64,000 nt of DNA. Origin: Schmidtea nova (taxonomy: Eukaryota). Below, piece by piece: positions 9,506-58,088 of the stretch (its first letter is position 1; each line of letters opens with the position of its first letter). The DNA lies in assembly GCA_044892505.1 (NCBI GenBank), contig CM097882.1, positions 121,272,001 to 121,336,000 on the forward strand. Reading direction: 5' to 3'. The notes beneath the pieces were generated by a model, which was not told where the DNA came from, searched no databases, and saw nothing but the letters and a program-made list of their open reading frames with translations. A program made the position numbers and the translations under genes.

Positions 9506-9679
9506 TAATTNNNNNNNNNNNNNNNNNNNNNNNNNNNNNNNNNNNNNNNNNNNNNNNNNNNNNNNNNNNNNNNNNNNNNNNNNNNNNNNNNNNNNNNNNN
9601 NNNNNNNNNNNNNNNNNNNNNNNNNNNNNNNNNNNNNNNNNNNNNNNNNNNNNNNNNNNNNNNNNNNNNNNNNNNNNNN

Positions 9680-11689: not shown

Positions 11690-11875
11690 CCACTCTAAAC
11701 TGTGCTACCACGTGTAACATTTTTGTCATCGGATTCTGGTATCAGATTCTGTTATATTCAATTCACATCAGCATTGACGATACCTTTTTCAACATTGTAG
11801 GCGGATAATAAAATCCCATTGGATCAAACATGCGTATTTTATTGGGTTTCACATAAATTGCAATCATGAAAATAT
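11690..11875 (-). pseudogene. Decayed adenain-like (Polinton PRO) cysteine protease relic
   Basis: Across frameshifts it reads (H)-IAIYVKPNKYA / MFDPMGFYYPP / IEYNRI*YQNP / VT(R)G. This resembles the HW.AIY...FDS.G..P...YN..YQ....CG pattern of Polinton proteases. Confidence 0.5.
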
Positions 11876-11889
11876 AATTTTAATCTTAT

Positions 11890-12340
11890 GCAGGTAAAAA
11901 CCATCACAAAAGAGGTTCTGATACAAAATAATCTGCTACTTGATAAAAAATGATGAAAATTCAAAAATATTGGTATATAAGTGAATATACAGTATGAAGC
12001 TTTTACAGGTAAAAACCATCACAAAAGAGGTTCTGCTACTAAAGGTTCTGTTACTAAATGTTCTGCTACTAGATAAAAATGATGAAAATTCAAAAATATT
12101 GGTATATGAGTGAAAATATATAGTATGAAGCTTTTACAGGTAAAATCCATCACAAAAGATGTTCTGATACTAAAGGTTCTGCTACTAAATGTTCTGCTAC
12201 GGGATAAAAAATGATGAAAATTCAAAAGAAAATATTGGTATATGAGTGAAAATATATAGTATGAAGCTTTTACAGGTAAAAACCATCACAAAAGAGGTTC
12301 TGCTACTAAAGGTTCTGCTAGGAAGGTTCTGCTAGTAGAA
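11890..12340. repeat. Tandem repeat, about 4 units of 113-135 bp containing a 15-bp subrepeat GGTTCTGCTACTAAA
   Basis: The unit start CAGGTAAAA(A)CCATCACAAAAGA recurs near 11891, 12005, 12137 and 12272. Confidence 0.85.
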
Positions 12341-12769
12341 AATAGACTGAAAAATTGTCTAAATGGGTGAAAATATTAATTAGCTTTGAAGTGTTAAAAC
12401 AGAATGGTTCTCGTCTACTTTTCAACGGATTTTCTCAATAGATTAATCACTTCAATTGGCCATCCCAGTTTCAACTTCTTTTTAGTGAAATTTGAATAAA
12501 TTTACCCTTTGTGTATTTTCAACTAAAGAACCTATCAATTTGAATATTTTCCTTGATAAATACATCATTCGAATGAATGTTCCATCATTTTTATTTTCAT
12601 CTTTAAAAGCTTTTCAAGTTACTGAGTACTATGAATTTTAGGAATTTTCATCTTTTTATGTTATTTCTTAGCTGAATTTATTTATTGTAATTACCAATTG
12701 AATTTTCTCCAATTATTGAACCTTTTTCAGTGGAATTCTCATTAAAGCTTTTACAATTCTAAATTTATA

Positions 12770-19245: not shown

Positions 19246-21997
19246 ATGATAGCACCCACATCAGGTGACAAAAATAACACATTTTGGGTGCACAGCAATA
19301 ACATAGACTTTTTAATAGATACCGGCTCGGTGATCTCACTACTGCCCCATTTTATGTATAAAAGTGCCAACAAAACAGAAAAACCATTAACAGCAGCTAA
19401 CGGCACAAACATAAAAACTTTCGGGCAACAAAAAATAAATTTAAACATAAATAAAAAGAACTACAACTGGACATTCACCATAGCTGAGGTCCAACAAGCA
19501 ATAATAGGAGCAGATTTCCTAACAAATTACAACCTCCTAGTGGATTGTAAAAACAAACAAATAATAGAAAATATTACTTATACTACAATACCACAGTACA
19601 ACACAAGCAACGGAGGAAAACCAAAAATAGACATCGGTGTTATCCAAACGGGTTCACCTAACAATAAACAAAAACAAAAATTAATTATAAAATAAACTAC
19701 TGAGAAAATTCGAAAAACTAACCGAACTAGTAACCTTCGACAAAAACGCGGATCATTGCACCGAACATGCAATCATAACAAACGGAAACCCAGTTCATGC
19801 AAAGCTGAGACAACTAGATCCACAAAAAACAAAAATTACGAACGAAATTTTCAAGGAGTTACTAGAAAACAAAATAGTAACTCACTCGAACTCTAATTGG
19901 TCCTCAGCACTCATGCTCAAACAAAAGGCAAACGGGGAATGGAGAGCTTGTGGCGACTACCGAATGCTCAACAAAATCACGGAACCAGACAACTACCCGT
20001 TGCCTATCATCAGAGACATAATAAACAGATTAAAAGGAGCAAAACTCTTCTCGAAAATAGATTTACAGAAGGCTTACCACCATATACCTATCAGGAACGA
20101 AGACATTAAAAAACAGCAATCCTAACACCAATCGGCATGTTCGAGTACAACAGAATGCCATTTGGTTTGCGAAACGCAGCTGCAACATTTCAACGATTTA
20201 TGGACAAGACTTTGAAAAATAACCAGAACACAATAGCTTATTTGGACGACATCCTCATAGCAAGTCCAAGCAAAACAATTCATTTTAAAGACATTGAAAA
20301 GGTGTTTGAAACGCTGGACTCAGCAAACCTCAAAATAAACATTCAAAAATGCGAATTCTTGAAAAAAGAAATAAATTTTCTGGGACACACACTGGACGAA
20401 AAAGGCACGAAGCCAATAGACAAGAAAATAAGCACGATACAAGAGTTCAAATTACCGAACACAAACAGAGAGTTAAGACGATTTTAGGGAATGGTAAACT
20501 TTTACCATGCGTACATCCCTAACTGCAGTGAATTGTTAGCTCCACTAAACGACCTGATCAAAACAAGAAGAAATATTAAAATAAACTGGACCGAACAAAC
20601 AACTAAACAGTTTGAAAAAGCAAAAACAAGCCTATCTCAAGCAACATTACTCGGATATCCAAATCCAGAACTAGACTACAACCTAGCAACAGACTGCTCC
20701 GGATATGCAATGGGCGCAACCTTATACCAAGATAACGAACACGGCAAACAGCCAATCGGGTTTTTCTCAAAAAAACTAAAAACACATCAAACACGGTCAA
20801 ACTTTGGTAAGATGTCAGCAATGAAAACACACCAAGAATACTCTTACCAAAAGAGTTTAGGAAATTGTGTATTTCGAAAATACATGACATCAGCCATCCA
20901 GGAAACAAAGCCACCTTCGAAATAATCCACAACAGATACATATGGCCAAATATGAGAAAGAAAATCAAAAGTTTCGTAAAAACATGCAAAAAGTGCCAAA
21001 TCAACAAAATATCAAAGAAACAACAACACAAAAAGTAAACTTTCCAAGCAGCCAACCTTTCGAGATGATTCACATTGACATAGTAGGACCGTTACCACCA
21101 AACAACGGGTACAACTACCTACTCACAATCATCGACAGAAAAACAAACTGGTTCGAAATTGTCCCACTAAAAGAAATATCCGCTCAGAACATATGTAAAA
21201 AGATTGAGCTAAATTGGATAGCTCGCTACGGTCAACCAAAAGTATTGATAACAGACCAAGGGAGACAGTTCGAATCAGAATTATTCAGTACTCTGTGCAA
21301 TAAATACAACATAAAAAGAAACCGCGCAACCGCTTACAACCCTCAAGCAAACGGAAAAATCGAGAGATTGCACAGAACACTAAAGGAAAGTATCAGAACT
21401 AAAGCAGACGACAGGAATTGGCTAAGTCAACTCCCGACAATCTTACTGGGACTAAGAAACACACCAAACTCAATCGAAAATGAAAGCCCAGCATACAAAG
21501 TATTCGGCAGACAATCAAATCTCCCAACAATTAAAAACAATACAGGAAAAAACGCAGAAACCAACAAACAAACAACCAACACAAACAACGAAAGAGTAGA
21601 AAAGAAATTAAAAGGAATCCTAAAAAAGAGAGCGAACTCTGAAATGGACGGAAAAGTAGTTCTAACGACAGACTACGTATTAATCAAAAAGCCCTTCACC
21701 AAAGGTTTCGAACCAAAATATGAAGGCCCATTCAGATTGCTAGAAATTAATAAAAATGTTGCAACAATAATAAAAGACAACATCAAAATAAGAATCAATC
21801 TAAGACGGATAAAACCGTATCACAATAATCAAAACACTTCAAACGACCCCACAAAAGAAAAAGCCTCGACACAAACAAAAACACAAACAAAACATAAACA
21901 CATCACATTCAACTACAAAAATTCAATAAAATTATTCGACAAGGACTCAATAATCACACCTCTATACAAAAAACGCTACAGCGATTGCCTCAAGTAA
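19246..21997 (+). pseudogene. pol: gypsy pol (PR-RT-partial RH-IN) with frameshifts and an RH/IN deletion
   Basis: Domain motifs appear in gypsy order in ORFs 19246-19695, 19913-20125, 20137-20487, 20491-20925 and 20942-21997. Confidence 0.9.
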
Positions 21998-33200: not shown

Positions 33201-34282
33201 TGACAAAAACCAAGAAAAGGTTATCTTTATTCTTCTAAAAATGTTGATTTTATGTTAGAAGATCCTGGTAGAAATTGTCCTAAACAGGTGAGAAGAATTA
33301 AAATCACTAAAAAGAGGTTCTGTTGATTGTTTTCAGAGACATTTAAAAGCCATAACTAATTAAATCAAATGTCAGTTGAACTATTAAATAAATTGCTTCA
33401 ACCCCCCCCCAGTAAATTGTCGCATTAAGATTGACATAAATAAAATTATACAAGATTATAATAAATATTTAGTAAGCTTGATTTATTTGAGATTCCTCGC
33501 TACTCCACGGAACGAAATAAAAGATGAAAATATTTTTATTTGTTGTTCAAATATAAGATAGAAAATTAAGACCGAAAGCAAGCGTTAAATATTAGTATTT
33601 CTATACACCTCCTGATTCCATAAAAAGATTCGTAAACCAAGCCATGTCGTCGCGATAACCATAACATGAATTGAAATAAAGAGCCAAGTATATTAAAAAA
33701 TGTAAATTATTAATACGAAATATCTATTTCCCAGATCTGCGATCATCCATTTGACCTTTACCCAAGGGCATACTGTCAATCTAATATTATTTCTTCAGTG
33801 CTCACTTTTATTGACCACGCGCCTCTTGTATCTATTTTCATATAAATTATAGCTAGATCATCCATTCGATGCTTGTGGACAATACTTGATCACGCAGATC
33901 TGGCTGAGGGGAACCATTATTCACGGATTACCGTTGAGTGAAGTCCATAACGCGAAACTTTGAAATGGAAAAGTTTTCGACATACAATAAAAAAGACTAA
34001 TATAATAACGCTTCCGACTGCTATCAAGTAGAAAATGTTNNNNNNNNNNNNNNNNNNNNNNNNNNNNNNNNNNNNNNNNNNNNNNNNNNNNNNNNNNNNN
34101 NNNNNNNNNNNNNNNNNNNNNNNNNNNNNNNNNNNNNNNNNNNNNNNNNNNNNNNNNNNNNNNNNNNNNNNNNNNNNNNNNNNNNNNNNNNNNNNNNNNN
34201 NNNNNNNNNTTTGATCTTTTTTTATTATTATTATCAATAATTCTCATAATGACTATAGATCAAATTTTTTTTATAAACAATA

Positions 34283-34315
34283 ACACAATATTTCGGCACA
34301 GCCTTTATCAAGTGT
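34283..34315 (-). ncRNA. Minimal hammerhead-like motif in the 3' pLTR
   Basis: Same ACAC-TTGATAAAGGCTGTGCCGAAATATT-GTGT motif. Confidence 0.6.
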
Positions 34316-34409
34316 GTATTTCTATCGTTATATTTACTTAATCCTAAATAGTAGCCTTAATTATTTTTTTAATATTTTATAATGATTTTATTGGATGAAA
34401 AAATTTATT

Positions 34410-34830
34410 TTAATTTTTTTGTGCGAATTGAATGTTGATGGACGGTTTGTATTTTTTTATGTAAAAAGTCTCGGAAGCTAATCTTTGTAATGAATTTTTG
34501 AATCCCTCTTGTAGAATCTGGCATTTTGTTTCTTCTATAGATGGAGTTGTTTTATGTACTTTCTCCCAGTGTTCGTAATAATTACTGGTTTTGTTTTTAG
34601 TGTGTTCATTAAGTCGGGTGCGAAAAGTTCTATGTGTTTCTCCTATGTAAGTAGCGTCACATTTTTGACAAGAAAGTTTATATACTATATTTTTGGAAAA
34701 GCAAAAGCATCGGGTTGTGGAACGGCAAAGACATTTATGTTTGGAGATGTTGGAAATTGGTGGCTTTCGGAGTTGTGATTTTAACGGTGCGGAGGTTATG
34801 AACGTTGGACGGATGTGGATACTATCCACA
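34410..34830 (-). CDS. GIY-YIG endonuclease domain of the PLE (out of frame with RT in this copy)
   Basis: VYKLSC..C...YIGET.R...RL.EH...E..YI.K.KP.IN pattern. Confidence 0.88.
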
Positions 34831-34842
34831 TCCGTCCAACGT

Positions 34843-37050
34843 TCATAACCTCCTCCACTGGATAGGCAAATCTGTTTGATTAAAAATGTTTGTGATTTTG
34901 TTGGCTGTAGTGTCATTTAGGAAAGGTAATCTTAGATATGTTGTGTGTTTGTTATTGTTATTGTGTTTCTGGCGTTTCCTATTGTTGCGTTTATTGTGGT
35001 ATGGTTCGTTAAGGAAGTGTTTCTTTACAAAGTCTTCAGGGTATCCATTTTGGAGGAATCGTATTTTGAAGTTTTCTAATGTTTCTTGTATTTTGTTTGA
35101 GTCTGAACAGTTTCTTATGGCTCTTTTTCTTTCTCCTATTAGTAATGCGATTTTGCGTTGAAGTGGAACGTAGCTTTTCCATGGGAGGATATGACCACTA
35201 TGTAAACTTTTAGAATAAAGCTCGGTGTTTGCATTTAGTGTATCTTGGCCTTTTGTGAAACTTACCATGGTATCTAAAAACGGTATTTTACCTTCTGTGT
35301 TCGGTGTTTCAAAAGTGAATTGTATGTTGGTGTTAGTAGAATTTGCGTGTGATAGGATTTGATTGAGAGGGATTGTGGAGACTATGAAGATGTCGTCGAT
35401 GTATCGTTTCCAGAAAAGTATTTTATCCCCAAAAAAAGATATGATCTTAGATTCTATAAAGTTCATGTAGAAGATGGCTAAGATGGGAGAAAGGTTATTA
35501 CCCATGGCTAATCCATGAATTTGTTTGAATGGTTTTTCTTTAATTATGACAGTATCTGAATTTATTGCTAATTTTAGAAGTTCTATAAAGTCTTGTTTAG
35601 TTAAGTCTGCGAGGTCAGTGTTGGCTTTATGAGTTTCAAAGAAAGAAGCTGCGATATCGAAAATGTTATTCTCTCCGTGAAGAGGAATAGATCCGTAAAG
35701 ATTGGAAACGTCAAGAGATCCCCAGAAGTACTGTTGTCCTGCGTTTAACGGAAGAGATGTATTTGTAATTTCGGAGACGAATTCAGTTGTGTTTTTAAGA
35801 TGAGAAGGAACCAAAGGCAAAAGTGTTTTTAGGATTTCTGAAAGAACTTTAGAAAGTGTTGTGGAAGGAGTGTCAACTGCGGATACAAGAGGTCTTTCTT
35901 TTAAAGGACTTTTGTGGTCTTTAGGTAACATAGTCATATTACTAGGTAAGGGCTCACTACAGTTGCATTTTAAAAGTAAATCTTTGATTTGAAGGTTGAT
36001 TTGTTTATTTGCAAGTGTTGACAGTTTCTTATTGTATAAAATCTGAGTCGATGCAGGTAAGATTATTTTGTTTATTGGTTCATAGTTCGAGAGATGTTCT
36101 TCAAATAGAGTATTGTATTGTTCTGTGTCAAGGGAAATTAGTCGATTTGTTTTATCTGATGGAAGAATTGTGAAGTCTTTGGAATTCTTAATTTTCTTTA
36201 TGTTTGAAGTGAAAGAATTTTGTGTTGAGCAATGTTTTTCAAGAAAGATAATTTGTTCTCTGACTAAAGTTTTGACTTTAGTTTCTAAACAGCTGATTTT
36301 TTCTTCAAGTTCAGTCGAAAAGACAGGCATATTTGGATATGTTCTACGATTTGGATCCAGAAGATGATTGTGCTTTTCAGCTAAACTTGAAGATTTGGTG
36401 GATGAAATTGGTTTTAGATGGTAACCTATTTGTCTTCTTAGGCTTATAAGAGAGGCGTTAGTGATGACTTCGGCTTTTTCTAAATCTTTCTGGTTAGGTG
36501 GAGGAACAAAAGATGGTCCTAGAGCGAGGATATTTTCTTGTGTTTTGGAAAAAATGTGATTAGATTTGTTTGTAAATGGAAGAATTGAATTTGAGTGTGA
36601 GTATGAGTCTTTAGTGTTGTTTGGATTTGTTGAAAGTAGCGTTTCTAATTTTTTATGCTTGCGAATGTCGAGATTTTTGGAGAAATTCTGGCAACAAGTA
36701 TTATCTTCACAAGTAAGAGGAGCACAAGGAAAACTAGTAAATTCATTTAGCTTTTTGTAACACGCTGAAATGCTAAGTTTAAGCCATTCTTTTTCCTGTT
36801 TTTCCTTAAGCTTCAATGCTTGTGAAGATGGATAGGTTGATTCAAGTTTGTTGGTAACAGTCAGGCCCACGGGAATGATGTTTCTTCTTTTGCATTCATT
36901 TAAAAAATGTAAGTGTGATTTTATTTTGATGATTTTGAGACTATAAAATAACGATTGATCTACTCGGTGATGAGCGTCCGCCAATATACTATCATAATTA
37001 TCTTTTTTCACCTTTGATCTTTTTTTATTATTATTATCAATAATTCTCAT
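34843..37050 (-). CDS. Penelope-like reverse transcriptase (735 aa), separated from its endonuclease by a 43-nt fold-back insertion
   Basis: ORF track and RT motifs. Confidence 0.92.
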   Translation of the reverse strand: MRIIDNNNKKRSKVKKDNYDSILADAHHRVDQSLFYSLKIIKIKSHLHFLNECKRRNIIPVGLTVTNKLESTYPSSQALKLKEKQEKEWLKLSISACYKKLNEFTSFPCAPLTCEDNTCCQNFSKNLDIRKHKKLETLLSTNPNNTKDSYSHSNSILPFTNKSNHIFSKTQENILALGPSFVPPPNQKDLEKAEVITNASLISLRRQIGYHLKPISSTKSSSLAEKHNHLLDPNRRTYPNMPVFSTELEEKISCLETKVKTLVREQIIFLEKHCSTQNSFTSNIKKIKNSKDFTILPSDKTNRLISLDTEQYNTLFEEHLSNYEPINKIILPASTQILYNKKLSTLANKQINLQIKDLLLKCNCSEPLPSNMTMLPKDHKSPLKERPLVSAVDTPSTTLSKVLSEILKTLLPLVPSHLKNTTEFVSEITNTSLPLNAGQQYFWGSLDVSNLYGSIPLHGENNIFDIAASFFETHKANTDLADLTKQDFIELLKLAINSDTVIIKEKPFKQIHGLAMGNNLSPILAIFYMNFIESKIISFFGDKILFWKRYIDDIFIVSTIPLNQILSHANSTNTNIQFTFETPNTEGKIPFLDTMVSFTKGQDTLNANTELYSKSLHSGHILPWKSYVPLQRKIALLIGERKRAIRNCSDSNKIQETLENFKIRFLQNGYPEDFVKKHFLNEPYHNKRNNRKRQKHNNNNKHTTYLRLPFLNDTTANKITNIFNQTDLPIQWRRL

Positions 37051-37086
37051 AATGACTATAGATCAAATTTTTTTTTATAAACAATA

Positions 37087-37119
37087 ACACAATATTTCGG
37101 CACAGCCTTTATCAAGTGT
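37087..37119 (-). ncRNA. Minimal hammerhead-like motif in the 5' pLTR, just upstream of the RT ATG
   Basis: Same motif, in sense to the ORF. Confidence 0.6.
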
Positions 37120-37194
37120 GTATTTCTATCGTTATATTTACTTAATCCTAAATAGTAGCCTTAATTATTTTTTTAATATTTTATAATGATTTAA

Positions 37195-37976
37195 TTGGAT
37201 GAATACGATTCCTCCAAAATGGATACCCTGAAGACTTTGTAAAGAAACACTTCCTTAACGAACCATACCACAATAAACGCAACAATAGGAAACGCCAGAA
37301 ACACAATAACAATAACAAACACACAACATATCTAAGATTACCTTTCCTAAATGACACTACAGCCAACAAAATCACCAACATTTTTAATCAAACAGATTTG
37401 CCTATCCACATCCGTCCAACGTTCATAACCTCCGCACCGTTAAAATCACAACTCCGAAAGCCACCAATTTCCAACATCTCCAAACATAAATGTCTTTGCC
37501 GTTCCACAACCCGATGCTTTTGCTTTTCCAAAAATATAGTATATAAACTTTCTTGTCTAAAATGTGACGCTACTTACATAGGAGAAACACATAGAACTTT
37601 TCGCACCCGACTTAATGAACACACTAAAAACAAAACCAGTAATTATTACGAACACTGGGAGAAAGTACATAAAACAACTCCATCTATAGAAGAAACAAAA
37701 TGCCAGATTCTACAAGAGGGATTCAAAAATTCATTACAAAGATTAGCTTCCGAGACTTTTTACATAAAAAAATACAAACCGTCCATCAACATTCAATTCG
37801 CACAAAAAAATTAAAATAAATTTTTTCATCCAATAAAATCATTATAAAATATTAAAAAAATAATTAAGGCTACTATTTAGGATTAAGTAAATATAACGAT
37901 AGAAATACACACTTGATAAAGGCTGTGCCGAAATATTGTGTTATTGTTTATAAAAAAAAATTTGATCTATAGTCAT
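37195..37976 (+). mobile_element. 5'-truncated inverted PLE copy (RT C-terminus, intact GIY-YIG, 3' pLTR)
   Basis: Reverse complement of 34210-35070 but without the fold-back insertion; the frame ...NQTDLPIHIRPTF... is continuous. Hammerhead-like motif at 37909-37941. Confidence 0.92.
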
Positions 37977-45649: not shown

Positions 45650-47512
45650 AACCCGTATGTTGGAGTGTCCTCGATGCAGAAAAATCTAAATGGAAATCAA
45701 ATTGAGAAGCCAAGTAAGACAAGTGGAATGTTGGACATGCCACAAAGTTTGACACGTTAGCAGGAACTGCAATTTAAAAAGAGAAGTTCAATGTTTGTCT
45801 TGTGGCGGCGATGGCCATATCAGACGAAATTGTCTAACGATACAATGTAGAAGGGGTAACGTCGGGTATATAAAGAGAGCGAGTGTTACACTAACCTTGA
45901 AAGACGGAATCAAACGGTGAATCAAACGGGGAATAGCTATGGATATAGAGAACCGAGATAACACAGGCAATTTGATGTGCAATAAACGAGATTCCCAAGA
46001 AGAAAGAACAACGTATAATTCAATAAAAGAAAATAGCCGCCTTTGAAAACTAAGATGACAAATCACCAATGAAATACGAAAACGAGATAAATCTATATGA
46101 TGACGAAGAATACCCTAAATATTAAGCTCCACCAAGAGAAGCTTTGATAGGAGCTATATGTTTGTGAGCTATGATTGTATGAATGTAATGAATGTGAATG
46201 ATAATAAAATTATAAATATAAATAATAAAGTAAATAATATAAATATTAAAGTAAATAATATAAATAATGAATTAAATTATAAAGTTAATAAAACCCAAAC
46301 GTATAAAAATAATATTCGAAATGCAATAGAAACAGATATCAGAACACTGGAAAAGTAGATAATTTCTTGAAGAAAGAAATAGTAAGAATCAATGAAATTA
46401 CGGAAACGATATTAGAAAGAGAGGATCATAGGATAATGTATAATAGGATTCAAGGTAGACCAAGTGTGATGCTGAATATAAAATGTTGGAAAATAAATTG
46501 TTTATTAGATACAGGAGTACGAGTGAACGTAATAGCAAAGACAGTTGTGGATAAATTAGATAAAGTAGAAATAATCGAAACCGGTGAATTATTAAAATGT
46601 GCGAATGATAGCAAACTAGAAACTTTAAGTAAGTTATATACTGGAGTTAAAATTGGCGATGTAGAAAGAAATGTATCATTTATTGTTGTTAAAAATATTG
46701 TTCCAGAGATAATTGGAGGAGTTGAACTACAAAAAAGCATTTGGAATAAAACTGGTATGGAACGACGAGAACAGAAAAAGCAATAGTGAATTTATTTGTG
46801 AGATTAAAGCACAATTCGGAAGAAATATATCAGATAACAAAAGAATGAAAAACGCGATATAGAAATTAAAAGTCACAGGAAATACAAGACTCCTAGAAAT
46901 TGTGAAAAATAATAAAAATGTTTTTATGGCAGACAAATGGGATATTGGATGTACAGACCTCATTGAACACAAGAATGTGACAAAAGGAGAAGCGATGATG
47001 ATAAAACCTAGACGACAATAAATAAATCTAAAATTAAAATAGAAAATGCAATAAAAAACTTAGAGAAAAACGATGTTATTAAGAAATGTAATTCGCGTTG
47101 GAACACACCATTATTATGTGTATGGAGAAAAGAGAAAAGAGATCAGATCAGATCATGCTTAGATTTCAGACAACTTAATAAAATAACAGAAAGACAAGCT
47201 TTTCCAATGCCAAACGTTGATGAAATTCTGGATACTCTACACTGGTCGAACTATTTCAGCTCAATAAACTTGGGAAATGCTTGCTACCAAGTAAAGTTAG
47301 ATAAATAATCTCAGGAAAAGACAGCATTTTTGACAAAAGAGGGACAATTTTGCTTAAACAGAATATCTTTCTGTATTGCAGCAGCAACCAAGCCCTTTCC
47401 AAGAACTTATGACCAAAGTATTAAATGAATTATGGAAAGATGGAGTAATGGTATATCTAGATGATATATTGATATTTACAAAAACAATAAAAGAACATTA
47501 TAATATACTAAG
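45650..47512 (+). mobile_element. Decayed gypsy element, 5' part (gag knuckles, protease, RT to YLDD)
   Basis: CWTCHKV*H and CLSCGGDGHIRRNC knuckles; CLLDTG protease; DFRQLNKIT; VMVYLDDILIF. Confidence 0.88.
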
Positions 47513-48767
47513 TGGATCGGCGCATCCAGCTCCTTTTGATTTCCTCATTTTTTGGACTGAGAACGCGAGATTTAATCATAGACAAATTGAAATTCTCATC
47601 ACTATCCGGCAAAGGATATCCATCGGGATTGGTAAACATATCTAATATTTCCGTGCTATTATTAGTTGGCTCGGTTGTTTTACTGTCCAGTGGAACACCG
47701 TCAACATCTAATGGCTCACCGTCATAATCGACAAGAGGTTTAACACGCAGCACATTTTCTTCGTCAACAAATTCCACTCGGTATTTCAAATGAGTATCAA
47801 ACGGTTCTACTTTTTCACCTGGTTTGATATTAGCTCCATTTCGGTGAAAGAAACACACAATGTCTTCCATTTCAAGTTTAAGGCCGCTAACTGGAACTCG
47901 GACATAATTAACATAAGTGCCATTGACACTTTGATCAGACAACCAAAACGAAAGATCATCAGCATTGTATTTTAATGTAGCATGCAATCGACTGAATGTG
48001 CTCAGTAACATATCGGCGTCATTCTTTTTCATTTGCATAATTGTAGGCAGAAATGAGCTGTGTGTCTTGCACAATATTTGAATCAAATTCTTGTAGATAT
48101 TCCGAAATTGCGGTGGAATTGTTTTCGGGCCTTCAATCAAGAGAAAAAGAGCTAAATTCTGATTAAGAGATGAGAAAATGTTCAAAAATTCCAAAGTAAT
48201 CGGATCAGATTTCTGATTGGCTGCTGCTGTTGATGGAATTGATGCATTATTGATGTTTAATTTTTTATTGAATGTATCGGATATATCACAGGAATGCCGT
48301 GATTGTTGAGGTAGCATAGAATAAACGGATGGGAATTCAGATTTCTCCAATTGATAACTTTGAGATCGATTGAGATTGGTTTTACGTGGAAATCCGATTT
48401 CATCTTCTGCTTTCATGAATTCCAATTGGAGGAACTCCCAAATGTTTGAGGAGCATTTCAATGAGTCGTAACAGATGAGTTTATATTCAGCCGCTGTTAA
48501 TATTTCGATATTTCCATGCCGATTGGCCAGATCTTTCCAATGAAACAGGAGATGCTTTAAAATATTGATATCTGAATGTGCCATCAACAGAACGTCGGGC
48601 TCACCACCGAGAAATGCAAAGGCAAAATCATTTAGTGAATTCAAATCAGAAACCCAATCAAATTCAAGTCGCTCCCAAAAAATTATATCTTCAATAAAAT
48701 GAATCCCTGATGAAATATTTGAAACGACAGATAAACCGTTCAAAGATGGTAGAGAAGATAATTCCAT
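47508..48767 (-). CDS. 419-aa LTR-encoded ORF (unknown N-terminus plus partial FHA); stop codon supplied by the target site
   Basis: SRLHATLKY...[16 protein letters not shown]...LEMEDIVCF is the C-terminal half of an FHA domain. Confidence 0.75.
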   Translation of the reverse strand: MELSSLPSLNGLSVVSNISSGIHFIEDIIFWERLEFDWVSDLNSLNDFAFAFLGGEPDVLLMAHSDINILKHLLFHWKDLANRHGNIEILTAAEYKLICYDSLKCSSNIWEFLQLEFMKAEDEIGFPRKTNLNRSQSYQLEKSEFPSVYSMLPQQSRHSCDISDTFNKKLNINNASIPSTAAANQKSDPITLEFLNIFSSLNQNLALFLLIEGPKTIPPQFRNIYKNLIQILCKTHSSFLPTIMQMKKNDADMLLSTFSRLHATLKYNADDLSFWLSDQSVNGTYVNYVRVPVSGLKLEMEDIVCFFHRNGANIKPGEKVEPFDTHLKYRVEFVDEENVLRVKPLVDYDGEPLDVDGVPLDSKTTEPTNNSTEILDMFTNPDGYPLPDSDENFNLSMIKSRVLSPKNEEIKRSWMRRST

Positions 48768-50078
48768 GTTTTCAGAAAAATTAACTCAAATACAATTTAC
48801 ACAAAAAAACCGAAATTCAAAATAAACAACACTTTTAAAGATTTTTATTCAAGATTTCAAAAAACCCCCAACACATTATAAAAACCGTGACGCAGTCAAA
48901 CAAAACAACCACAAGTCTTTTAATTCCACCATTTCCAAAAAAAAACTTCTTTAATCCAACTTCAACAACTCGCGTCTGTGTGCGCACCCCCAGTTGATTC
49001 TGATGATCTCTCTAACAAACAACTCAAATTTGGTGCATTTTGCTTCGTTATATTAATTGTAGTCAGTTTACATTGTTCAATATCATTATAAAAATTCAAA
49101 ATATCATCACTTTGACTCTTAATAAAAGATTTATCAACTTCATTTATGTTTTTACCGTAAGTATTTTTAATTGCATTTTGAAATTGTTTTGCTTTATCGC
49201 AACCGAGTTCCCCGCTTATAATTGCCCATTTATCAGTAATATTATTATCTTCGTTGAAATAGATAGACAGAAAACGTGCAAAAGAAATGTCAAATGTTTC
49301 ATTCATTTGTGCAATTTCCGGTAGAAATTGTACAATAGTGGATTTGAGTTTTTGTAATTTAATATTCAGGTTTTTCTCGAGAATTATTAATAAATTATAG
49401 TTATTACTCACATTTATTCCACTCAAAGGGATATTGAGGGAGTTTTCAATGATTTTATGAGAAAATGATTTGAGAAATATTTTTTCTTGGTCAGTGTTGG
49501 TAAATTTTTTTTAACTTTTTACTAATGTGAAATCGAATCCATCGAATTATTTCCATTACTCGTACATCAGTTATTATATTTAAATCAAATTTCTCTTTGA
49601 ATTCTGTGCTAAGATTAGAAAACTGAATTCCAATATTTTCATCGGCATCAAATTGACATTTGGAAATGAATTTCATTAAACTACCTGGTATTTTATTGTC
49701 GTTAATATTAGAAGAACATTGTTGAGCTTCATTGACATCATCAAAGGGCATAAATTTTTTCAATTTTACAAAGCCAGAAAACTTTTTTATGTCACTTAAT
49801 GAAGAACGAACAGATTTTAAAAGATGACCAATTTCTTCAAATTCTGAAACATTGAATAGGCAATATCCGGAAAATGGATGTAGATAATATTCATTTATCT
49901 TTTTGAAATTGCAAAGTAATAGTGGTAATCACGCATATAAGATTTATATAGATTTCGATAAGACCGTCTAACGGCTTCCAGGCTCGCCCCACAATCTCTC
50001 ATAGCGATCAAGCACCCAATTAATTATTTTAATTATTATTTATTTAATTTTAAAAATATTTTAGAGCGGGCGCGACCA
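47513..50078 (-). repeat. 3' LTR (2566 bp)
   Basis: Same length as 53631-56196 and identical translations of all ORFs; preceded on the minus strand by the PPT. Confidence 0.95.
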
Positions 50079-50091
50079 TTCTCCCCCCTTT
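50079..50091 (-). promoter_or_regulatory. Polypurine tract AAAGGGGGGAGAA abutting the 3' LTR
   Basis: Purine run directly 5' of the TG that starts the 3' LTR on the minus strand. Confidence 0.9.
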
Positions 50092-50166
50092 GACATTCTG
50101 TCAACATCAACACTTCATCCACTTCTCTCTTTCTCCATGACCAGTAAACTCTCCACGAGTCCTCCT

Positions 50167-53100
50167 TTAATTCCAAATGTGGAAGACTCGCCACCTTTTC
50201 CTTTTTATCACCTCAGGAGGAAGTATTTCCTTCCAATCAATTCTTTGCATCCATGCCTCTTGCATGATGCCTTTATTTATTAGTTTTGCAACTGTGTAAA
50301 ACATTATCCGAACCTTTGTAATTTCCCCATCACGCCCCACAACCGGACTATGCAGCATACACCATTTTGTTCTATTTTCCTTTAAATTAACTTCTAATTT
50401 GATCAACTGACTCTCAATTAATTCTTCAACTCTTTTTGATTCGATCAATTCTTCGCCAGTCTTCATTACATTGTTAGAAATAGAAATTTCCCCTTTGGTA
50501 ATTATTTCCAATTTCCTTGAGACTTCTTTAACCAACTCCATGTTAGTACTAAGTCCCATTTTCAAGAAATCTTTTTCTATCATTAAAGATTTCAAGTTTA
50601 ATTTAATATTTTCAATCATTCCCAGACTGTCATTTAGTTTAATTATTAAATTACCATTTACTTCCGTCAAATCCTTCACCAAGGTTTGCTGAGAAGCGAT
50701 TTCGTCATTAGCCGCTCGAAGTTTTTCTAGGTAATCACTTTCCTTTTCTTTCATCTCCACATTTAAATGCCTTTCTTTCGCAGTAAGCTCATTTAAATAG
50801 ATTTCATTTCGTTCAATTTTTATTTCTAGTTCTCGATTTACAGCTGCCAATTTAACATTAATATCATTTACATTTTCTATCTCAGCTGACAACGTTTCTA
50901 CAGTTTCAGCCAAATTCTCTAATTTTACTTCTGATTCATTAATTTCCTTTTTACGTTCTAATTCGATCGTTTCTATTTTCTTTTGAAGAACTTCTATTTT
51001 TAAATGAAGCTGTGTTATTAAACCTGACTTGTCAGCAAGAGAGTGTTTTGTTTCGATTTCATAATTCCTCAAATTCGTTTCCTGCTCACCCTTGTGAGCT
51101 TTAACTAATGCCAGCTCGTCAAATAATTTTGAATATTCTTCAAATAAAGATTCCAATTTACTTTGAATTACATTCTTGCTTTTTGATAAATTCTCATAAT
51201 TAACCATGCAAGATTTCATTTTCGTCTCTAAATCGGCCACCTCCGTTTCTCTCAATTTTAACGACATTGTCTTGCTTCTTTCTTTTTCTAATTCCAATTC
51301 CATTTTATTTTTTCTATTTTCGAATTCAATTTTATCCTTTAGTTCTTCATTTATCAAATTCCCATTTTTCTCTTTCAAACTATTTATTTCTTTGTTCAAT
51401 TCTGAAAATGTTCTTTCTGACGATACCTCTATGGACAGAAATGTACTTCTTCCTTCTTCTTCCATTGTCCTGGAAATACCTTGATTCTTATTCTTCCAAG
51501 ATGGTTTCACCTCTATTTGCTCATTTCTAGACGCTACTCGGTGATCGGTGAAACCATATACTTCTTCCAACACGTTCCGCTTCATTTCTGCTAACTGCGA
51601 TATCCATTCAGTGACTGCTTCTACATTCTTTTCCTTTCTATTCTCCGCTCTCCATTTTGCCCACTGGAACACTAAATCCTCAGGTAATTTCTTTATTAGC
51701 GCCTGATATAGAAATCTACTTTCAATCTCATTTTTCTTGCCCAGCGCTTTAAGCCTTATCATCACTGAACTTATTAACTCTTGAAAGGCTTCCAGTTCAC
51801 CAATCGAATCTGACTGAACAGGATTAAAGCGATTTAATTCCTCCGAAATTGCGAGAAAACCTCTTTCTACACCTCCATATCGCCTGTCCAACCACGCCAA
51901 GGCTGCTTCATACGCATCTGCTGTAAACCCCAGTTGATTTACAACCCTATGTGGTTCATCCTTTAGAGATTGCTTTAAATGCAGCAACTTCTCTACCTTT
52001 GTTCCAAAGGCCGAATCCACACAGGCATCAAAGGTGGCTCTCCACTGAGCATATTCCAACGTTTTCCCATTGAACACTGGGATTTCTATCTTCTTTAATT
52101 TTTCCAACCGTTTCAATACCAAACCTTCCTGACTTTTCCCCTTGGCTCTAAGAATCTTTTCTTCCTGGACTAGTAAATTCGGTTCTTCTATCTCTTGGCT
52201 TTTAATGCTTCTGTCCATCATTCTTTTTTCTGGAAAGCGATTCGCTTCGTTTACTGTGCTTTTGTCTATCTCTAATCTTCCTAAATGTTCATTTTGCTCT
52301 TCGATAGCATCTAATTCCTGATCAAAGCGTCTGGCAGCTTCCAGGTCCCCCAACTCTTCTGCTAAGCTCTTTAGCCTGCTCCAATCCTCCAGCACTTCAT
52401 CAAAGTCTTCTTCGTATTCCTCTTGACGTTGCACGCGATCCGCTTCCGACAGGTATTCTGAGGCTCTCCTGAATAGTCTGGTGAGGTGCGTCTTCTGAAC
52501 GCAGAGCTTCTCGATCCCATTCTTTAGCTGCAACTGTTTGTCTTGGGTTTTCATACCTCCTCGTAATCTCAACCCCAAATGCAAGGTAGATTCCCTTTGC
52601 ATATTATAATAACATAATGTTCGTCCGTCTTCCAGTTGTTTTCCAGCGAAGATCAACCTTTGCTGGTCAGGCGAAATACCTTCTTTGTCTTGTATTCTCG
52701 CTTTTACATTCTCGATTGTGTCACTTGATTCAACTTCCAGGGTAATAGTTTTCCCTGATAAAGTCCTCACAAACATCTGTATACCACCTCTCAATCGTAA
52801 ACCCAATTGCCAAGTTGACTCCGTTTTATTCTCTTTCATTCGCGGACTATACTCTTTTAAACCTGTACTTGCATCACCACTTGGCCTTGAATAACAACAC
52901 AAACATTCCGCTACTTTAGCTTTATTTACACTGTCTTCACGAATACCTAATTTAATATTTTTAGCAAAATGATCATACAAATTTTTATAATTAGCTTCGT
53001 ATTGTATTATTCGTACAATACGTTCTAAGACTTTTCCCCCTAACTCTTTTCTGAATACTTTCAAAATTCTATTTTGTTGCAACATTTCCCGGTTGGTATT

Positions 53101-54885
53101 CAATATAAAATCTCCCCTGATATAACCGGTCCACCTACTAACCTCTACACCTTTAAATCTCGAGTTATCTTTTCCTATACATATTGCTTCATAAGCAGGT
53201 GACACAATTTTATCCCTTTGTCTATTTGATTCATCAAATGATCTTTTCTTATTTTTTGTTTTATCAAAATCTTTAGTTAAAGTTTGCTTTTCACCACATA
53301 CAAGTTTTGTGGGATTATCATAAGTATCCCTAAGTTTCTCACTAAAGGGCATGCTTGATTTATCACTACGGCTACCATCAAGCTTAATAACCTGTTTCAA
53401 ATACGTATTTTCAGGTGACCCATCCTTTTCGTTCTCAGACCCAACTGAGCATAAGGGAAGGGGATGGTCGCGGGGGCCCATTACCGCGCTAAATTCCCCC
53501 ATTAAATTCATTATTAATTTTAAATTTTTAATGTTTTTAGAAAAATATGCGGCGCTGTGACCACTATAAGCAATTAAGAAGCTTACCCGCCGTGCGTGGC
53601 CCCCCGAAGGGAACCACGCTCTGCTACCAATGGATCGGCGCATCCAGCTCCTTTTGATTTCCTCATTTTTTGGACTGAGAACGCGAGATTTAATCATAGA
53701 CAAATTGAAATTCTCATCACTATCCGGCAAAGGATATCCATCGGGATTGGTAAACATATCTAATATTTCCGTGCTATTATTAGTTGGCTCGGTTGTTTTA
53801 CTGTCCAGTGGAACACCGTCAACATCTAATGGCTCACCGTCATAATCGACAAGAGGTTTAACACGCAGCACATTTTCTTCGTCAACAAATTCCACTCGGT
53901 ATTTCAAATGAGTATCAAACGGTTCTACTTTTTCACCTGGTTTGATATTAGCTCCATTTCGGTGAAAGAAACACACAATGTCTTCCATTTCAAGTTTAAG
54001 GCCGCTAACTGGAACTCGGACATAATTAACATAAGTGCCATTGACACTTTGATCAGACAACCAAAACGAAAGATCATCAGCATTGTATTTTAATGTAGCA
54101 TGCAATCGACTGAATGTGCTCAGTAACATATCGGCGTCATTCTTTTTCATTTGCATAATTGTAGGCAGAAATGAGCTGTGTGTCTTGCACAATATTTGAA
54201 TCAAATTCTTGTAGATATTCCGAAATTGCGGTGGAATTGTTTTCGGGCCTTCAATCAAGAGAAAAAGAGCTAAATTCTGATTAAGAGATGAGAAAATGTT
54301 CAAAAATTCCAAAGTAATCGGATCAGATTTCTGATTGGCTGCTGCTGTTGATGGAATTGATGCATTATTGATGTTTAATTTTTTATTGAATGTATCGGAT
54401 ATATCACAGGAATGCCGTGATTGTTGAGGTAGCATAGAATAAACGGATGGGAATTCAGATTTCTCCAATTGATAACTTTGAGATCGATTGAGATTGGTTT
54501 TACGTGGAAATCCGATTTCATCTTCTGCTTTCATGAATTCCAATTGGAGGAACTCCCAAATGTTTGAGGAGCATTTCAATGAGTCGTAACAGATGAGTTT
54601 ATATTCAGCCGCTGTTAATATTTCGATATTTCCATGCCGATTGGCCAGATCTTTCCAATGAAACAGGAGATGCTTTAAAATATTGATATCTGAATGTGCC
54701 ATCAACAGAACGTCGGGCTCACCACCGAGAAATGCAAAGGCAAAATCATTTAGTGAATTCAAATCAGAAACCCAATCAAATTCAAGTCGCTCCCAAAAAA
54801 TTATATCTTCAATAAAATGAATCCCTGATGAAATATTTGAAACGACAGATAAACCGTTCAAAGATGGTAGAGAAGATAATTCCAT
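50167..54885 (-). CDS. 1572-aa chimeric polyprotein: unknown - partial FHA - Hsp90 fragment - Ub tail + ubiquitin - Pao Gag - coiled coil - Pol remnants
   Basis: Single uninterrupted ORF; each domain recognised by motif (see the sub-features). Confidence 0.88.
50210..50364 (-). other. In-frame BEL/Pao Pol remnants (RT N-terminal motif fused to a connection/peptidase A17-like segment)
   Basis: [22 protein letters not shown] resembles WYLPHHPV.K....TKLRIVF; [18 protein letters not shown] resembles ..LQ.LW...LDWD..LP. Confidence 0.7.
51560..52554 (-). other. gag: BEL/Pao Gag region (DUF1759-like)
   Basis: [28 protein letters not shown]...KLLHLKQSL...[13 protein letters not shown]...IKKLP. Confidence 0.88.
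52555..52782 (-). other. Captured ubiquitin (76 aa), preceded by the tail of another Ub unit (52783-52821)
   Basis: [12 protein letters not shown]|[76 protein letters not shown]|M. Confidence 0.97.
52825..53127 (-). other. HSP90: Captured, diverged Hsp90 middle-domain fragment
   Basis: [19 protein letters not shown]...[31 protein letters not shown]...[12 protein letters not shown] vs Hsp90 LNISREMLQQSKILKVIRK...[31 protein letters not shown]...SLKDYCTRMKEN. Confidence 0.93.
53612..53629 (-). promoter_or_regulatory. Primer-binding site TGGTAGCAGAGCGTGGTT (complementary to the tRNA-iMet 3' end)
   Basis: 1 nt downstream of the 5' LTR's terminal CA. TGGTAGCAGAG complements the conserved animal initiator tRNA end CTCTGCTACCA. 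Confidence 0.88.
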
Positions 54886-56196
54886 GTTTTCAGAAAAATT
54901 AACTCAAATACAATTTACACAAAAAAACCGAAATTCAAAATAAACAACACTTTTAAAGATTTTTATTCAAGATTTCAAAAAACCCCCAACACATTATAAA
55001 AACCGTGACGCAGTCAAACAAAACAACCACAAGTCTTTTAATTCCACCATTTCCAAAAAAAAACTTCTTTAATCCAACTTCAACAACTCGCGTCTGTGTG
55101 CGCACCCCCAGTTGATTCTGATGATCTCTCTAACAAACAACTCAAATTTGGTGCATTTTGCTTCGTTATATTAATTGTAGTCAGTTTACATTGTTCAATA
55201 TCATTATAAAAATTCAAAATATCATCACTTTGACTCTTAATAAAAGATTTATCAACTTCATTTATGTTTTTACCGTAAGTATTTTTAATTGCATTTTGAA
55301 ATTGTTTTGCTTTATCGCAACCGAGTTCCCCGCTTATAATTGCCCATTTATCAGTAATATTATTATCTTCGTTGAAATAGATAGACAGAAAACGTGCAAA
55401 AGAAATGTCAAATGTTTCATTCATTTGTGCAATTTCCGGTAGAAATTGTACAATAGTGGATTTGAGTTTTTGTAATTTAATATTCAGGTTTTTCTCGAGA
55501 ATTATTAATAAATTATAGTTATTACTCACATTTATTCCACTCAAAGGGATATTGAGGGAGTTTTCAATGATTTTATGAGAAAATGATTTGAGAAATATTT
55601 TTTCTTGGTCAGTGTTGGTAAATTTTTTTTAACTTTTTACTAATGTGAAATCGAATCCATCGAATTATTTCCATTACTCGTACATCAGTTATTATATTTA
55701 AATCAAATTTCTCTTTGAATTCTGTGCTAAGATTAGAAAACTGAATTCCAATATTTTCATCGGCATCAAATTGACATTTGGAAATGAATTTCATTAAACT
55801 ACCTGGTATTTTATTGTCGTTAATATTAGAAGAACATTGTTGAGCTTCATTGACATCATCAAAGGGCATAAATTTTTTCAATTTTACAAAGCCAGAAAAC
55901 TTTTTTATGTCACTTAATGAAGAACGAACAGATTTTAAAAGATGACCAATTTCTTCAAATTCTGAAACATTGAATAGGCAATATCCGGAAAATGGATGTA
56001 GATAATATTCATTTATCTTTTTGAAATTGCAAAGTAATAGTGGTAATCACGCATATAAGATTTATATAGATTTCGATAAGACCGTCTAACGGCTTCCAGG
56101 CTCGCCCCACAATCTCTCATAGCGATCAAGCACCCAATTAATTATTTTAATTATTATTTATTTAATTTTAAAAATATTTTAGAGCGGGCGCGACCA
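53631..56196 (-). repeat. 5' LTR (2566 bp), with a TATA-like TATATAAA about 130 nt from its start and internal ORFs
   Basis: Direct repeat of 47513-50078, followed by the PBS. Confidence 0.95.
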
Positions 56197-56201
56197 CTAA
56201 G

Positions 56202-58088
56202 GATGGTATTAGAAAAGATCTCACTGGCAAAATTAAAAATTAATCCAGAAAAGTGTCAAATATTAAAAAAGAAGTTAGGTTTCTTGGACATATAATAAAC
56301 AGCGAAGGGATCCGAACAGACCAAAGTAAAATAGAAGCGATACAGTCTTTTAAAAGACCAAAATGCACAAAGAACTTAGGAAGTGTTTTAGGAATATGCA
56401 ATAATTACATACAATTTATTAAAGAATATACGAAGAAAGTTAGAGTGTTGGAAAGTATATATGGAAAAGATAATGAAAGATTAATGTGGACAGAAACATG
56501 TCAGATAGCATTCGAAGAAATAAAAAAGGTATTCGTGATGGCATCGGTGTTAGCATTTTAGAAGAGAGTTTATTCTGGACACAGGCATTAGTTTTGATGC
56601 AATTGGAGCGGTACTTTCTCAAAAGTATGATTCTGGATATGAACACGTTATTGCTTATGTATATCATGCAATGAGTAACCATGAAAAAGGCTACTGTATA
56701 ACGAGGAAAGAATTACTGGCAATATATTACTTCTGCAAAAGTTTAAATCACTATTTATTTGGGAAAAGATTTTTATTGAGAGCAGATCATAAGGCTATTA
56801 CCTTTATTTTGACAACGAAAAAGCCAATAACAGCACAATTTCTAACTTGGATCAATCATTTAAGCAGCCTTGATATAAAGATGGAATATAGGAAATGCAT
56901 TGATCATGGAAATGCGGATATCCTGTAAAGGAAAACGTGCGGAACATGTATACAATGCAAGATAGAACACGAAGAACCGAAAAGCGGACGAGTAAAAACA
57001 AGGTTATTGACAGTAACAACGGAAGGCAGCGTAAATAAGTGGCGAAACAGTAATGATGAGATAAAAGAAATAAAGAATGAAATATAAAAGTACAAGAATG
57101 GAAGATTCATCATAAAAGAAAATACAATATATACGAACAAGAACAAACTATGGACACCAAAATCGAAAAGACGAAATATGATCAAGGAGACGCATTCAAC
57201 GCAATGCTATGCAGGAACACAGAAAGTAACAAACTATATCCAACAAAATTTCAACATGGAAGATTTGGTAAAAGAAGTAAAATCAGTAATTGAAAACTGT
57301 ATTGCGTGTCAGAAAACGAAGACACTTACCATAGAGACAAAAGAAGAAGATTTTAGATGATCTATGTGGATATATGTGGATCAGTGAAAGAAACAATCAA
57401 AAGAGAAAGATACATATGTGATATCATTGACCATTACTGTAAATACATTTCTCTGTCTGCTATAGCTAAACAAGATGAAAAAACAATATTGAATATTTTG
57501 CTAAACAAATGGATATTAAGATGTTGAGCACCGAAAAAACTGCATGCAAACTGTGGGAAGTGTTTTGAGTCAAACTGTATAAAAGAATTTGCAAAGTCAA
57601 AAGGAATCGAAATAGTGTTTTCAGGTCCATATCACCAAAACACCAATGGATAAATAGAAGGGCAGTTTCGCACAATCAGAGATTATATTAACGCGTCGTT
57701 AAAAGAACAAAGCAGAAAAAGTTGGGCAGAGACATTACCGGAAATTGAATATACCTTGAATGCGATAATACAGAAAACAAGTCCGGTAGAAATCATTTTT
57801 GGAAGGAAAATTAACAGATCAGAATGGTATAGCAGTACTTCAATAGATAAAGAAAGAAAGATAAAAAGCAAGAAAACGGAAGTATCAAACGCAAAAGAGA
57901 CCAAAACAACAAGAATTTTCAATAAATGAGATACTCTATAAATAAAACGTGAGATTCGAAATAAAAAATTTGAAGGACCATATACAATAATAAAGAAAAT
58001 TCAAGAAAGAAGCTATTTTTTAGAAGATGAAGAAGGCAAAACCATAAAAAGAAATATCGAAAAAATGAAAGATTTTAAAAAAGGAGGA
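56202..58088 (+). mobile_element. Decayed gypsy element, 3' part (RT end, RNase H, integrase, PPT)
   Basis: KEVRFLGHII; YCITRKELLAIYYF...FLLRADHKA; integrase YVDICG...GPYHQNTNG. AAAAGGAGGA PPT followed by TGTGA at ~58089. Confidence 0.88.

Follow-up and report, generated by a model that had tools for sequence, protein, structure and literature searches.

Linear ubiquitin precursors are processed by the deubiquitinases (DUBs) UCHL3, USP5, USP7, USP9X and OTULIN (PMC4522658), and in cytopathogenic pestiviruses captured ubiquitin gives a protein a new N-terminus (PMC13517609). The ubiquitin insertions of these viruses are often mosaic, comprising partial units along with other host fragments (PMC13517609, PMC8310069). 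In retrotransposons lacking long terminal repeats (LTRs), 2A-like ribosome-skipping peptides occur at the N-terminus of open reading frames (ORFs) (PMC3708506). Here we analyze a stretch of 64,000 nucleotides from Schmidtea nova (GCA_044892505.1, contig CM097882.1, positions 121,272,001 to 121,336,000; referred to in its entirety as the window), which holds a BEL/Pao-derived LTR retrotransposon whose ORF carries a captured ubiquitin directly in front of Gag. In the prevailing view, LTR retroelements cut their polyproteins by means of an aspartic protease of their own. For the BEL/Pao clade to which the window element belongs, we predict a ubiquitin leader that is cleaved by host DUBs, thereby stripping leader and cargo from Gag, a reading toward which we lean without regarding it as secure.

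The window element resembles BEL/Pao elements in its DUF1759 Gag, TG...CA LTRs, 5-bp target-site duplication (TSD), primer-binding site (PBS) and polypurine tract (PPT), and in the pol order seen in its relatives. It differs from them by the ubiquitin before Gag, by an ORF that begins within the LTR and crosses the PBS, by a 2.6-kb LTR that is half coding and by loss of pol. No report of ubiquitin in Pao elements, or of ubiquitin fused to Pao Gag, was found in the literature, coverage of which was incomplete. With the natural precursors (polyubiquitin, Ub-L40, Ub-S27a) the window ubiquitin shares the LRLRGG end in peptide linkage with the next protein and a residue other than proline after Gly-76. 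In contrast to these precursors, it lacks Met-1 and is placed inside a longer protein, where hundreds of residues precede it, and it differs by 12 substitutions including V70G and by having a retroelement capsid protein as partner.

Pestiviruses, which we compared by description only, are alike in that recombination has placed host ubiquitin in a polyprotein, immediately ahead of a protein that owes its N-terminus to it. The window element has this arrangement as well, in the sense of a functional analogy only. However, the pestivirus captures are recent, arise sporadically and independently of each other in an RNA virus and are linked to a biotype change, whereas the junction in the clade of the window element is an inherited trait of retrotransposons that has diverged down to 22/76 identity at the lowest. 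The 2A-like peptides likewise separate an upstream piece from a functional protein without an element protease, but they are unlike in sequence and act in the ribosome with no host enzyme involved, whereas post- or co-translational hydrolysis by DUBs would apply here. Maize Bs1 is a non-autonomous LTR element with transduced host gene fragments. Elements of this type also possess a Gag-containing, pol-less ORF that is a mosaic of element and host-mRNA pieces, but they have no ubiquitin separator, and their cargo does not lie upstream of a conserved cleavable junction. Finally, Ddi1-type proteins are alike in carrying a ubiquitin-like domain N-terminal to retroelement-type modules, in this case a retropepsin-like protease. 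Ddi1, however, is a host gene whose ubiquitin-like domain lacks the Gly-Gly end and stays uncleaved, and it has neither Gag nor LTRs.

A ubiquitin unit flush with the Pao Gag

The element is encoded on the reverse strand. Throughout positions 50167-54885 its ORF frame is free of stops (0 in 1572 codons), compared with 51-159 stops in the five other frames. The ORF and its parts are:

50167..54885, - strand: ORF of 1572 codons, in the order leader/cargo, ubiquitin tail, ubiquitin, Gag, coiled-coil-like stretch, pol remnants
53977..54138, - strand: FHA domain, aa 250-303, encoded by the LTR (Pfam E 3.9e-06)
52822..53112, - strand: Hsp90 fragment from the middle domain of the cytosolic form, aa 592-688 (Pfam E 2.8e-23, profile positions 187-283 of 518)
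52783..52818, - strand: 12-residue C-terminal tail of ubiquitin, aa 690-701, which ends LRLRGG and stems from a preceding polyubiquitin unit
52555..52782, - strand: full ubiquitin unit, aa 702-777, with Ile at position 1 and ending LRLRGG
52552..52557, - strand: predicted cleavage junction for host DUBs between Gly-76 and Met, aa 777/778 (from model and relatives)
51556..52554, - strand: Gag, with long helices at its N-terminus, followed by a disordered linker and the DUF1759 core, which is helical (Pfam, AlphaFold)
51655-52074, - strand: DUF1759, the Pao Gag domain, aa 938-1077 (Pfam E 1.9e-12)
50371..51465, - strand: coiled-coil-like stretch rich in K, E and L, aa ~1141-1505
50191..50394, - strand: pol remnant, one broken gene in two short stretches (BLASTP to the relative P0121, E 3e-06 and 7e-05)

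An initial annotation of this locus had placed a captured ubiquitin with two LRLRGG ends directly before a Pao Gag. Translation, Pfam and alignment confirmed this assignment, and the interval it gave (52552-52821) covers exactly the tail, the full unit and the Met of Gag; partial and full polyubiquitin-derived units thus lie precisely in front of Gag, which is of Pao type as judged by its DUF1759 domain. The Pfam ubiquitin match extends over aa 705-774 (E 8.6e-26), and the unit is identical to solved ubiquitin at 64/76 positions, the 12 differences including M1I, K6R, K29R, K63R and V70G. The stretch therefore reflects true homology rather than a chance motif. A database homologue search in which the ubiquitin was included, and which was dominated by polyubiquitin, returned nothing closer to the window ubiquitin than the canonical protein.

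An AlphaFold model of tail, ubiquitin and Gag has the beta-grasp fold over the full unit, with a predicted local distance difference test score (pLDDT) of 87-90, and Foldseek aligned the unit with ubiquitin chains at TM-scores of 0.93-0.98. Directly behind LRLRGG stands residue 778 (52552-54, - strand), the Met that opens MKTQDK and Gag; thus, the unit retains the LRLRGG end and is followed by a residue other than proline. The Gly-Gly/Met junction is modelled as flexible (pLDDT <50) between two folded modules, with long helices beyond. Apart from an altered hydrophobic patch (described below), sequence and predicted structure together support the view that the Gag-proximal LRLRGG/M carries the features of a linear ubiquitin fusion that host DUBs could cleave.

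Related elements and conservation of the junction

The window Gag alone was used in a HMMER search of 1.84 billion representatives, which yielded 1844 Pao Gags, and the best 150 of these matches were inspected for ubiquitin. A search with Gag alone had revealed ubiquitin or a ubiquitin-like (Ubl) unit directly before Gag in P0121, and within these 150 the same holds for five more sequences (P0123, P0131, P0148, P0182 and P0213), while P0142 carries the bare ubiquitin tail KLKGG at this place. P0121 is a single ORF of 2576 aa from a metagenomic contig of 10 kb (L001), in which a kinesin fragment, a Sec23/24 trunk and beta-sandwich, a low-complexity region, a Ubl ending LRGG and Met plus Gag are followed by pol. 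The latter consists of DUF1758 protease, reverse transcriptase (RT), Peptidase_A17, integrase and DUF5641 in the order typical of Pao, and P0121 is autonomous. Protease sequences alongside the Ub(l)-Gly-Gly/Gag junction are also kept in P0123. The window Gag is 35-40% identical to that of P0121, depending on the alignment, and 36% identical to that of P0131. In the other relatives, unit end and next residue (separated by a slash) read LRLRGG/S (P0148), LNLYGG/S (P0131), LKLRGG/G (P0123), LRLKGG/M (P0213), RLKEG/N (P0182) and, for the tail-only P0142, KLKGG/S. Metagenome locus scans with two family alignments returned no confirmed relative, and a profile search with a third one returned P0148 alone, so that the family stays at eight sequences.

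In a neighbor-joining tree of 124 Pao Gags, the four ubiquitin-bearing Gags with long coverage form an exclusive clade of four. When short fragments are added, all seven fall into one split of 15 taxa, the other members of which are N-terminally truncated or tail-only with the exception of one outlier. The ubiquitin units share derived states, i.e. Ile-1 in three members, Arg-6 in three, Ser-9 in four, Ile-67 in five and Leu-70 in four, which argues for one ancestral capture.

Conservation was counted over the seven full units (window and six relatives), with the tail-only P0142 added where eight members are stated. While these units match canonical ubiquitin at 22-64 of 76 positions, residues 71-76 are the best-conserved window of six residues (rank 1 of 71), the share identical to canonical being 0.81 at these residues vs 0.58 at positions 1-70. 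Gly-76 and Leu-73 are each kept in 7/7 units and Gly-75 in 6/7; counting all eight members, Gly-Gly is kept in seven. The residue that follows is Met in three members, Ser in three, Gly in one and Asn in P0182, which ends in EG, but never Pro. At the position after Gly-76, proline alone is known to prevent ubiquitin fusions from being cut. Met-1, on the other hand, is kept in one unit of seven, and translation must therefore initiate upstream of the ubiquitin. Lys-48 persists in six of the seven. The hydrophobic patch is canonical at Leu-8 in 6/7, at Ile-44 in 3/7 and at Val-70 in 1/7 units; the window unit itself has Leu-8, Ile-44 and Gly at position 70. Between units, the proportion of synonymous differences (pS) is saturated (0.56-0.92), and that of nonsynonymous differences (pN) is much lower for most pairs, e.g. 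0.14 vs 0.89. A low pN/pS speaks for purifying selection only on condition of a single capture.

The tail upstream of the full unit behaves differently. In the window element it is modelled as disordered (pLDDT <50), and no folded ubiquitin stands before its LRLRGG, as just 12 ubiquitin residues follow the Hsp90 fragment. In the six relatives that are readable at this place, the upstream LRLRGG is absent in five and degenerate in the sixth (P0131). Since no ubiquitin fold precedes the motif and these relatives either lack it or have a degenerate form, the upstream LRLRGG is a relic of the polyubiquitin repeat that was captured, and not a working second site. The two tails agree at 26/36 nt, and many of the differences are synonymous. 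This pattern resembles that of adjacent polyubiquitin repeats, and a recent internal duplication as source of the two tails was ruled out, as 10/36 nt differ, mostly at synonymous sites. Both tails have Gly-70, encoded by GGT in one and GGG in the other, each being one transversion away from a Val codon. Gly-70 is found in no relative; a parallel change, conversion between the tails and a variant source gene are candidate explanations.

Element structure, leader and surroundings

The boundaries of the element were defined by the following features:

47513..56196, - strand: complete non-autonomous BEL/Pao-derived LTR retrotransposon of 8684 bp (identical LTRs, TSD, PBS, PPT, single ORF)
53631..56196, - strand: 5' LTR of 2566 bp with TG...CA ends, holding the ORF start and the first ~418 codons including FHA
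47513..50078, - strand: 3' LTR of 2566 bp, 100% identical to the 5' LTR
56197..56201, - strand: TSD CTTAG, 5' side
47508..47512, - strand: TSD CTTAG, 3' side
50079..50091, - strand: PPT AAAGGGGGGAGAA, adjoining the 3' LTR
53612..53629, - strand: PBS TGGTAGCAGAGCGTGGTT, 1 nt past the 5' LTR, within the ORF and read as ..GSRA..

The element thus has the hallmarks of an LTR retrotransposon, i.e. LTRs with TG...CA ends, a short TSD, a PBS, which is single-copy in the window, and a PPT. A tandem or assembly duplication as origin of the 2.57-kb repeat was ruled out by TSD, PBS and PPT. It is a very recent insertion of a non-autonomous BEL/Pao (Belpaoviridae-type) derivative, and since the two LTRs are identical, its family has been active in this genome very recently. 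The LTR is unusual in its length of 2566 bp and in that its 3' half is protein-coding, each LTR carrying the start of the main ORF. The start codon (54883-54885) corresponds to LTR position 1312, i.e. it lies 1311 nt from the 5' end of the LTR. The 3' LTR alone encodes a 419-aa ORF with the FHA domain (47508-48767, - strand), which ends in the flank; a solo LTR of this family would consequently encode a protein. In the U3-side half of the LTR, an ORF of 154 aa (55080-55544, - strand) has a sub-threshold match (E 4.6e-4, 20.2 bits vs a cut-off of 25.4) to the Nop domain of Nop56/58-type small nucleolar ribonucleoproteins, and it may be another decayed fragment of a host gene.

The PBS of the window element is identical over 18 nt in L001, where it directly follows an LTR of ~360 bp, and over 12 nt in L002, the contig of P0131. 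Each of the three has an ORF that begins in the LTR and translates the PBS, in the same frame, as ..GSRA... On L001 this is a separate ORF of 315 aa (798-1745), which crosses the PBS and does not run on into the main ORF of 2576 aa. The LTR pair of L001 is 87% identical despite the intact main ORF, and this metagenomic contig may be a composite of copies.

Between PBS and ubiquitin, the cargo changes from member to member, being FHA and Hsp90 (profile 187-283) in the window element, kinesin and Sec23/24 in P0121, Hsp90 (profile 283-348) in P0131 and a few residues in P0182. Overlapping Hsp90 fragments in the window element and P0131 were ruled out, the two profile segments being adjacent. A shuffle-controlled alignment of the window Hsp90 fragment with the N-terminus of P0131 was not significant, and the two fragments may be of common or of independent origin. 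The window fragment matches Hsp90-alpha in the PDB with E 7e-23, about half of the residues being identical, and the FHA domain has a weak PDB match to the FHA domain of CEP170 (E 0.003). The cargo of aa 1-591 reached a pLDDT of 30 in a single-sequence AlphaFold prediction. Read-through into Gag needs an open frame in any case, and the open cargo frame therefore says nothing about cargo function.

Downstream of Gag, the coiled-coil-like stretch (aa ~1141-1505) has no match in Pfam or PDB and sits where the autonomous relatives have zinc knuckle and protease. The Hsp90 and coiled-coil parts have a host-like GC content of 30-31%, compared with 43% for Gag. The two pol-remnant stretches, of ~35 residues each, correspond to the parts before and after RT in the Pao pol of P0121. 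Pol is broken in three ways, namely by replacement with the unrelated coiled-coil-like stretch, by an internal deletion and by 3' truncation; the broken gene contains no stops or frameshifts. Pfam detected neither protease nor RT, RNase H or integrase in the window element, which thus lacks a Pao pol; this copy is for this reason classed as non-autonomous and would depend on an autonomous partner for enzymes. In P0142 (contig L004), Gag is followed by CCCH zinc fingers and a long coiled coil, which makes it a second clade member with pol replaced by coiled-coil sequence. The two coiled-coil stretches have no similarity, and a tail common to both elements was therefore discarded.

The insertion interrupts the RT gene of another retroelement, which is Ty3/Gypsy-like, decayed and located on the + strand. 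When the two flanks of this element (46367-47510 and 56671-57360, + strand) were examined separately, an aspartyl protease (weak match) and RT were found on one side and RNase H and an integrase zinc-binding domain on the other. Elsewhere in the window, a Penelope-like element (34210-37976) comprises a 735-aa RT ORF (34843-37050, - strand) and an adjoining GIY-YIG ORF (34410-34916, - strand), flanked by inverted repeats (34249-34821 vs 37403-37976, 99.7%) and N runs. A large inverted repeat within 7126-14960 (7331-9508 vs 12765-14949, 95.7%) consists mostly of tandem sub-repeats whose period is about 115-150 bp, and an additional tandem array is located at 9943-10870. An ORF of 351 aa (20942-21997, + strand) contains the integrase core rve (E 4.9e-13) and is part of another retroelement or of a DNA transposon. 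Scans of the window for tRNAs and Rfam families gave no matches.

Proposed processing by host deubiquitinases and competing readings

Starting from the anatomy, homology, lineage distribution and conservation pattern observed above, we infer cleavage, the translation start and a selective rationale as follows. A ubiquitin or Ubl unit would have been captured from host polyubiquitin mRNA, with Gag or Gag-Pol as its C-terminal partner. Translation would start upstream of the ubiquitin, in the window element inside the LTR, and ribosomes would pass the PBS and a variable leader of host-mRNA fragments, then the ubiquitin, and continue into Gag. Host DUBs that process linear ubiquitin precursors would cut after Gly-76, giving two pieces and not three, i.e. 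leader/cargo-ubiquitin and Gag with an N-terminus of its own, which in the window element would include the coiled-coil tail. In this manner, the ubiquitin would serve as a host-operated separator that makes in-frame upstream sequence harmless to Gag, and such a role would account for the variation of the upstream cargo among members. The same reading would explain the exact placement of the ubiquitin, the conservation of its tail while the body drifts, the missing Met-1 and the ORF across the PBS.

Several observations weigh against this reading. Changes in the hydrophobic patch including V70G could weaken binding of DUBs, and the site is not invariant, one relative ending in KEG and another in LYGG. 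Should the units stem from separate captures in different hosts, no selection within the element could be read from the low pN/pS. The Ub-Gag family is known from eight sequences, with every relative being a singleton cluster, and bootstrap support is weak once fragments are included, as 14/100 replicates keep all seven in a split of at most 16 taxa. In addition, the contigs of two relatives have the frame closed a short distance before the Ubl, with no intervening ATG; these are either dead copies or use a different start.

The drifted patch, in which Val-70 is canonical in one unit and Ile-44 in three of the seven, would also suit a Ubl that stays uncleaved as an N-terminal Gag domain, binding to the proteasome, endosomal sorting complexes required for transport (ESCRT) or ubiquitin receptors, or directing turnover via the ubiquitin-fusion-degradation route. 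The member ending in KEG fits this idea, and the persistence of the fold at 22/76 identity (Pfam match in P0121) suggests that the body itself matters. Stable Ubl domains, however, generally lose the terminal Gly-Gly, whereas here the tail is the best-conserved window with Gly-76 in 7/7 units, the junction is modelled as a flexible linker, and at least 700 residues of variable, unrelated cargo would remain on Gag, so that we regard a permanently attached Ubl as unlikely. Alternatively, RT might have switched templates onto abundant stress mRNAs such as those of Hsp90 and polyubiquitin, leaving neutral hitch-hikers whose frame is open for read-through and whose Gly-Gly has no role. The mosaic of unrelated host fragments that varies between members, the host-like GC content of the cargo, the partial-plus-full ubiquitin pattern typical of raw capture and the clearly vestigial first LRLRGG are what such a process would leave behind. 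But a sequence carried along passively should not retain its final six residues best when its body has fallen to 22/76 identity, nor would it be expected in the same position flush with the Gag start in 8/8 members and never followed by Pro, and this makes mere hitch-hiking improbable.

The initial annotation had gone further than a single cut and proposed that cleavage at both LRLRGG ends yields an FHA/Hsp90 piece, free ubiquitin and Gag, compensating for a lost element protease. Its premises hold for the window copy, in which both motifs are intact and Pfam detects no protease domain, and the retention of RGG on a drifted ubiquitin body, which it had pointed out, applies to the Gag-proximal junction as the best-conserved part of the ubiquitin across relatives. 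Conservation of both RGG ends, in turn, is true within the window copy, but across the relatives the Gag-proximal end is largely kept and the upstream end is not. Precursor-processing DUBs recognize folded ubiquitin upstream of the scissile bond, whereas the upstream motif follows 12 disordered residues and is missing or degenerate in 6/6 readable relatives, which argues against a second site and the release of free ubiquitin. Compensation is not supported either, since P0121 and P0123 have the same junction together with protease sequences, meaning that the junction predates pol loss, and since a cut at the Gag N-terminus does not replace the internal cuts of a protease. We give the two-cut scheme almost no credence. 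A different emphasis is placed on the upstream product when the host pieces (Hsp90, kinesin, Sec23/24, FHA) are viewed as selected accessories that are released as cargo-ubiquitin and perhaps conjugated. Long cargo ORFs have stayed open despite much divergence, the Hsp90 fragment matching Hsp90 at about half of its residues; three members carry cargo, Lys-48 is kept in 6/7 units, and N-terminally extended ubiquitin is conjugatable. Yet the pieces are partial domains unrelated between members, some members such as P0182 have almost no upstream sequence, read-through demands an open frame anyway, and the cargo model is poor (pLDDT 30); selection for such accessories appears highly doubtful to us. 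The related proposition that the captured ubiquitin is a standing cargo slot, from which DUBs release Gag and a functional cargo-ubiquitin acting as interfering fragment or conjugatable adduct, is one we consider rather unlikely.

If the ubiquitin leader is indeed cleaved, the cut at the Gag N-terminus would be handed over to host DUBs, which would represent a new processing strategy for retrotransposons, and the conserved Gly-Gly junction predicts a precise neo-N-terminus for Gag. The clade would then offer an inherited equivalent to the ubiquitin captures that occur sporadically in pestiviruses, as well as an analogue of 2A peptides that works through host enzymes, and a single explanation would cover the LTR-started ORF, translation through the PBS and the tolerance of a large, changing cargo. 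Should the cargo slot exist, these would be the first retrotransposons known with accessory proteins expressed via processing by host DUBs. Cleavage of the leader would also bear on how retroelements shuffle and express host exons.

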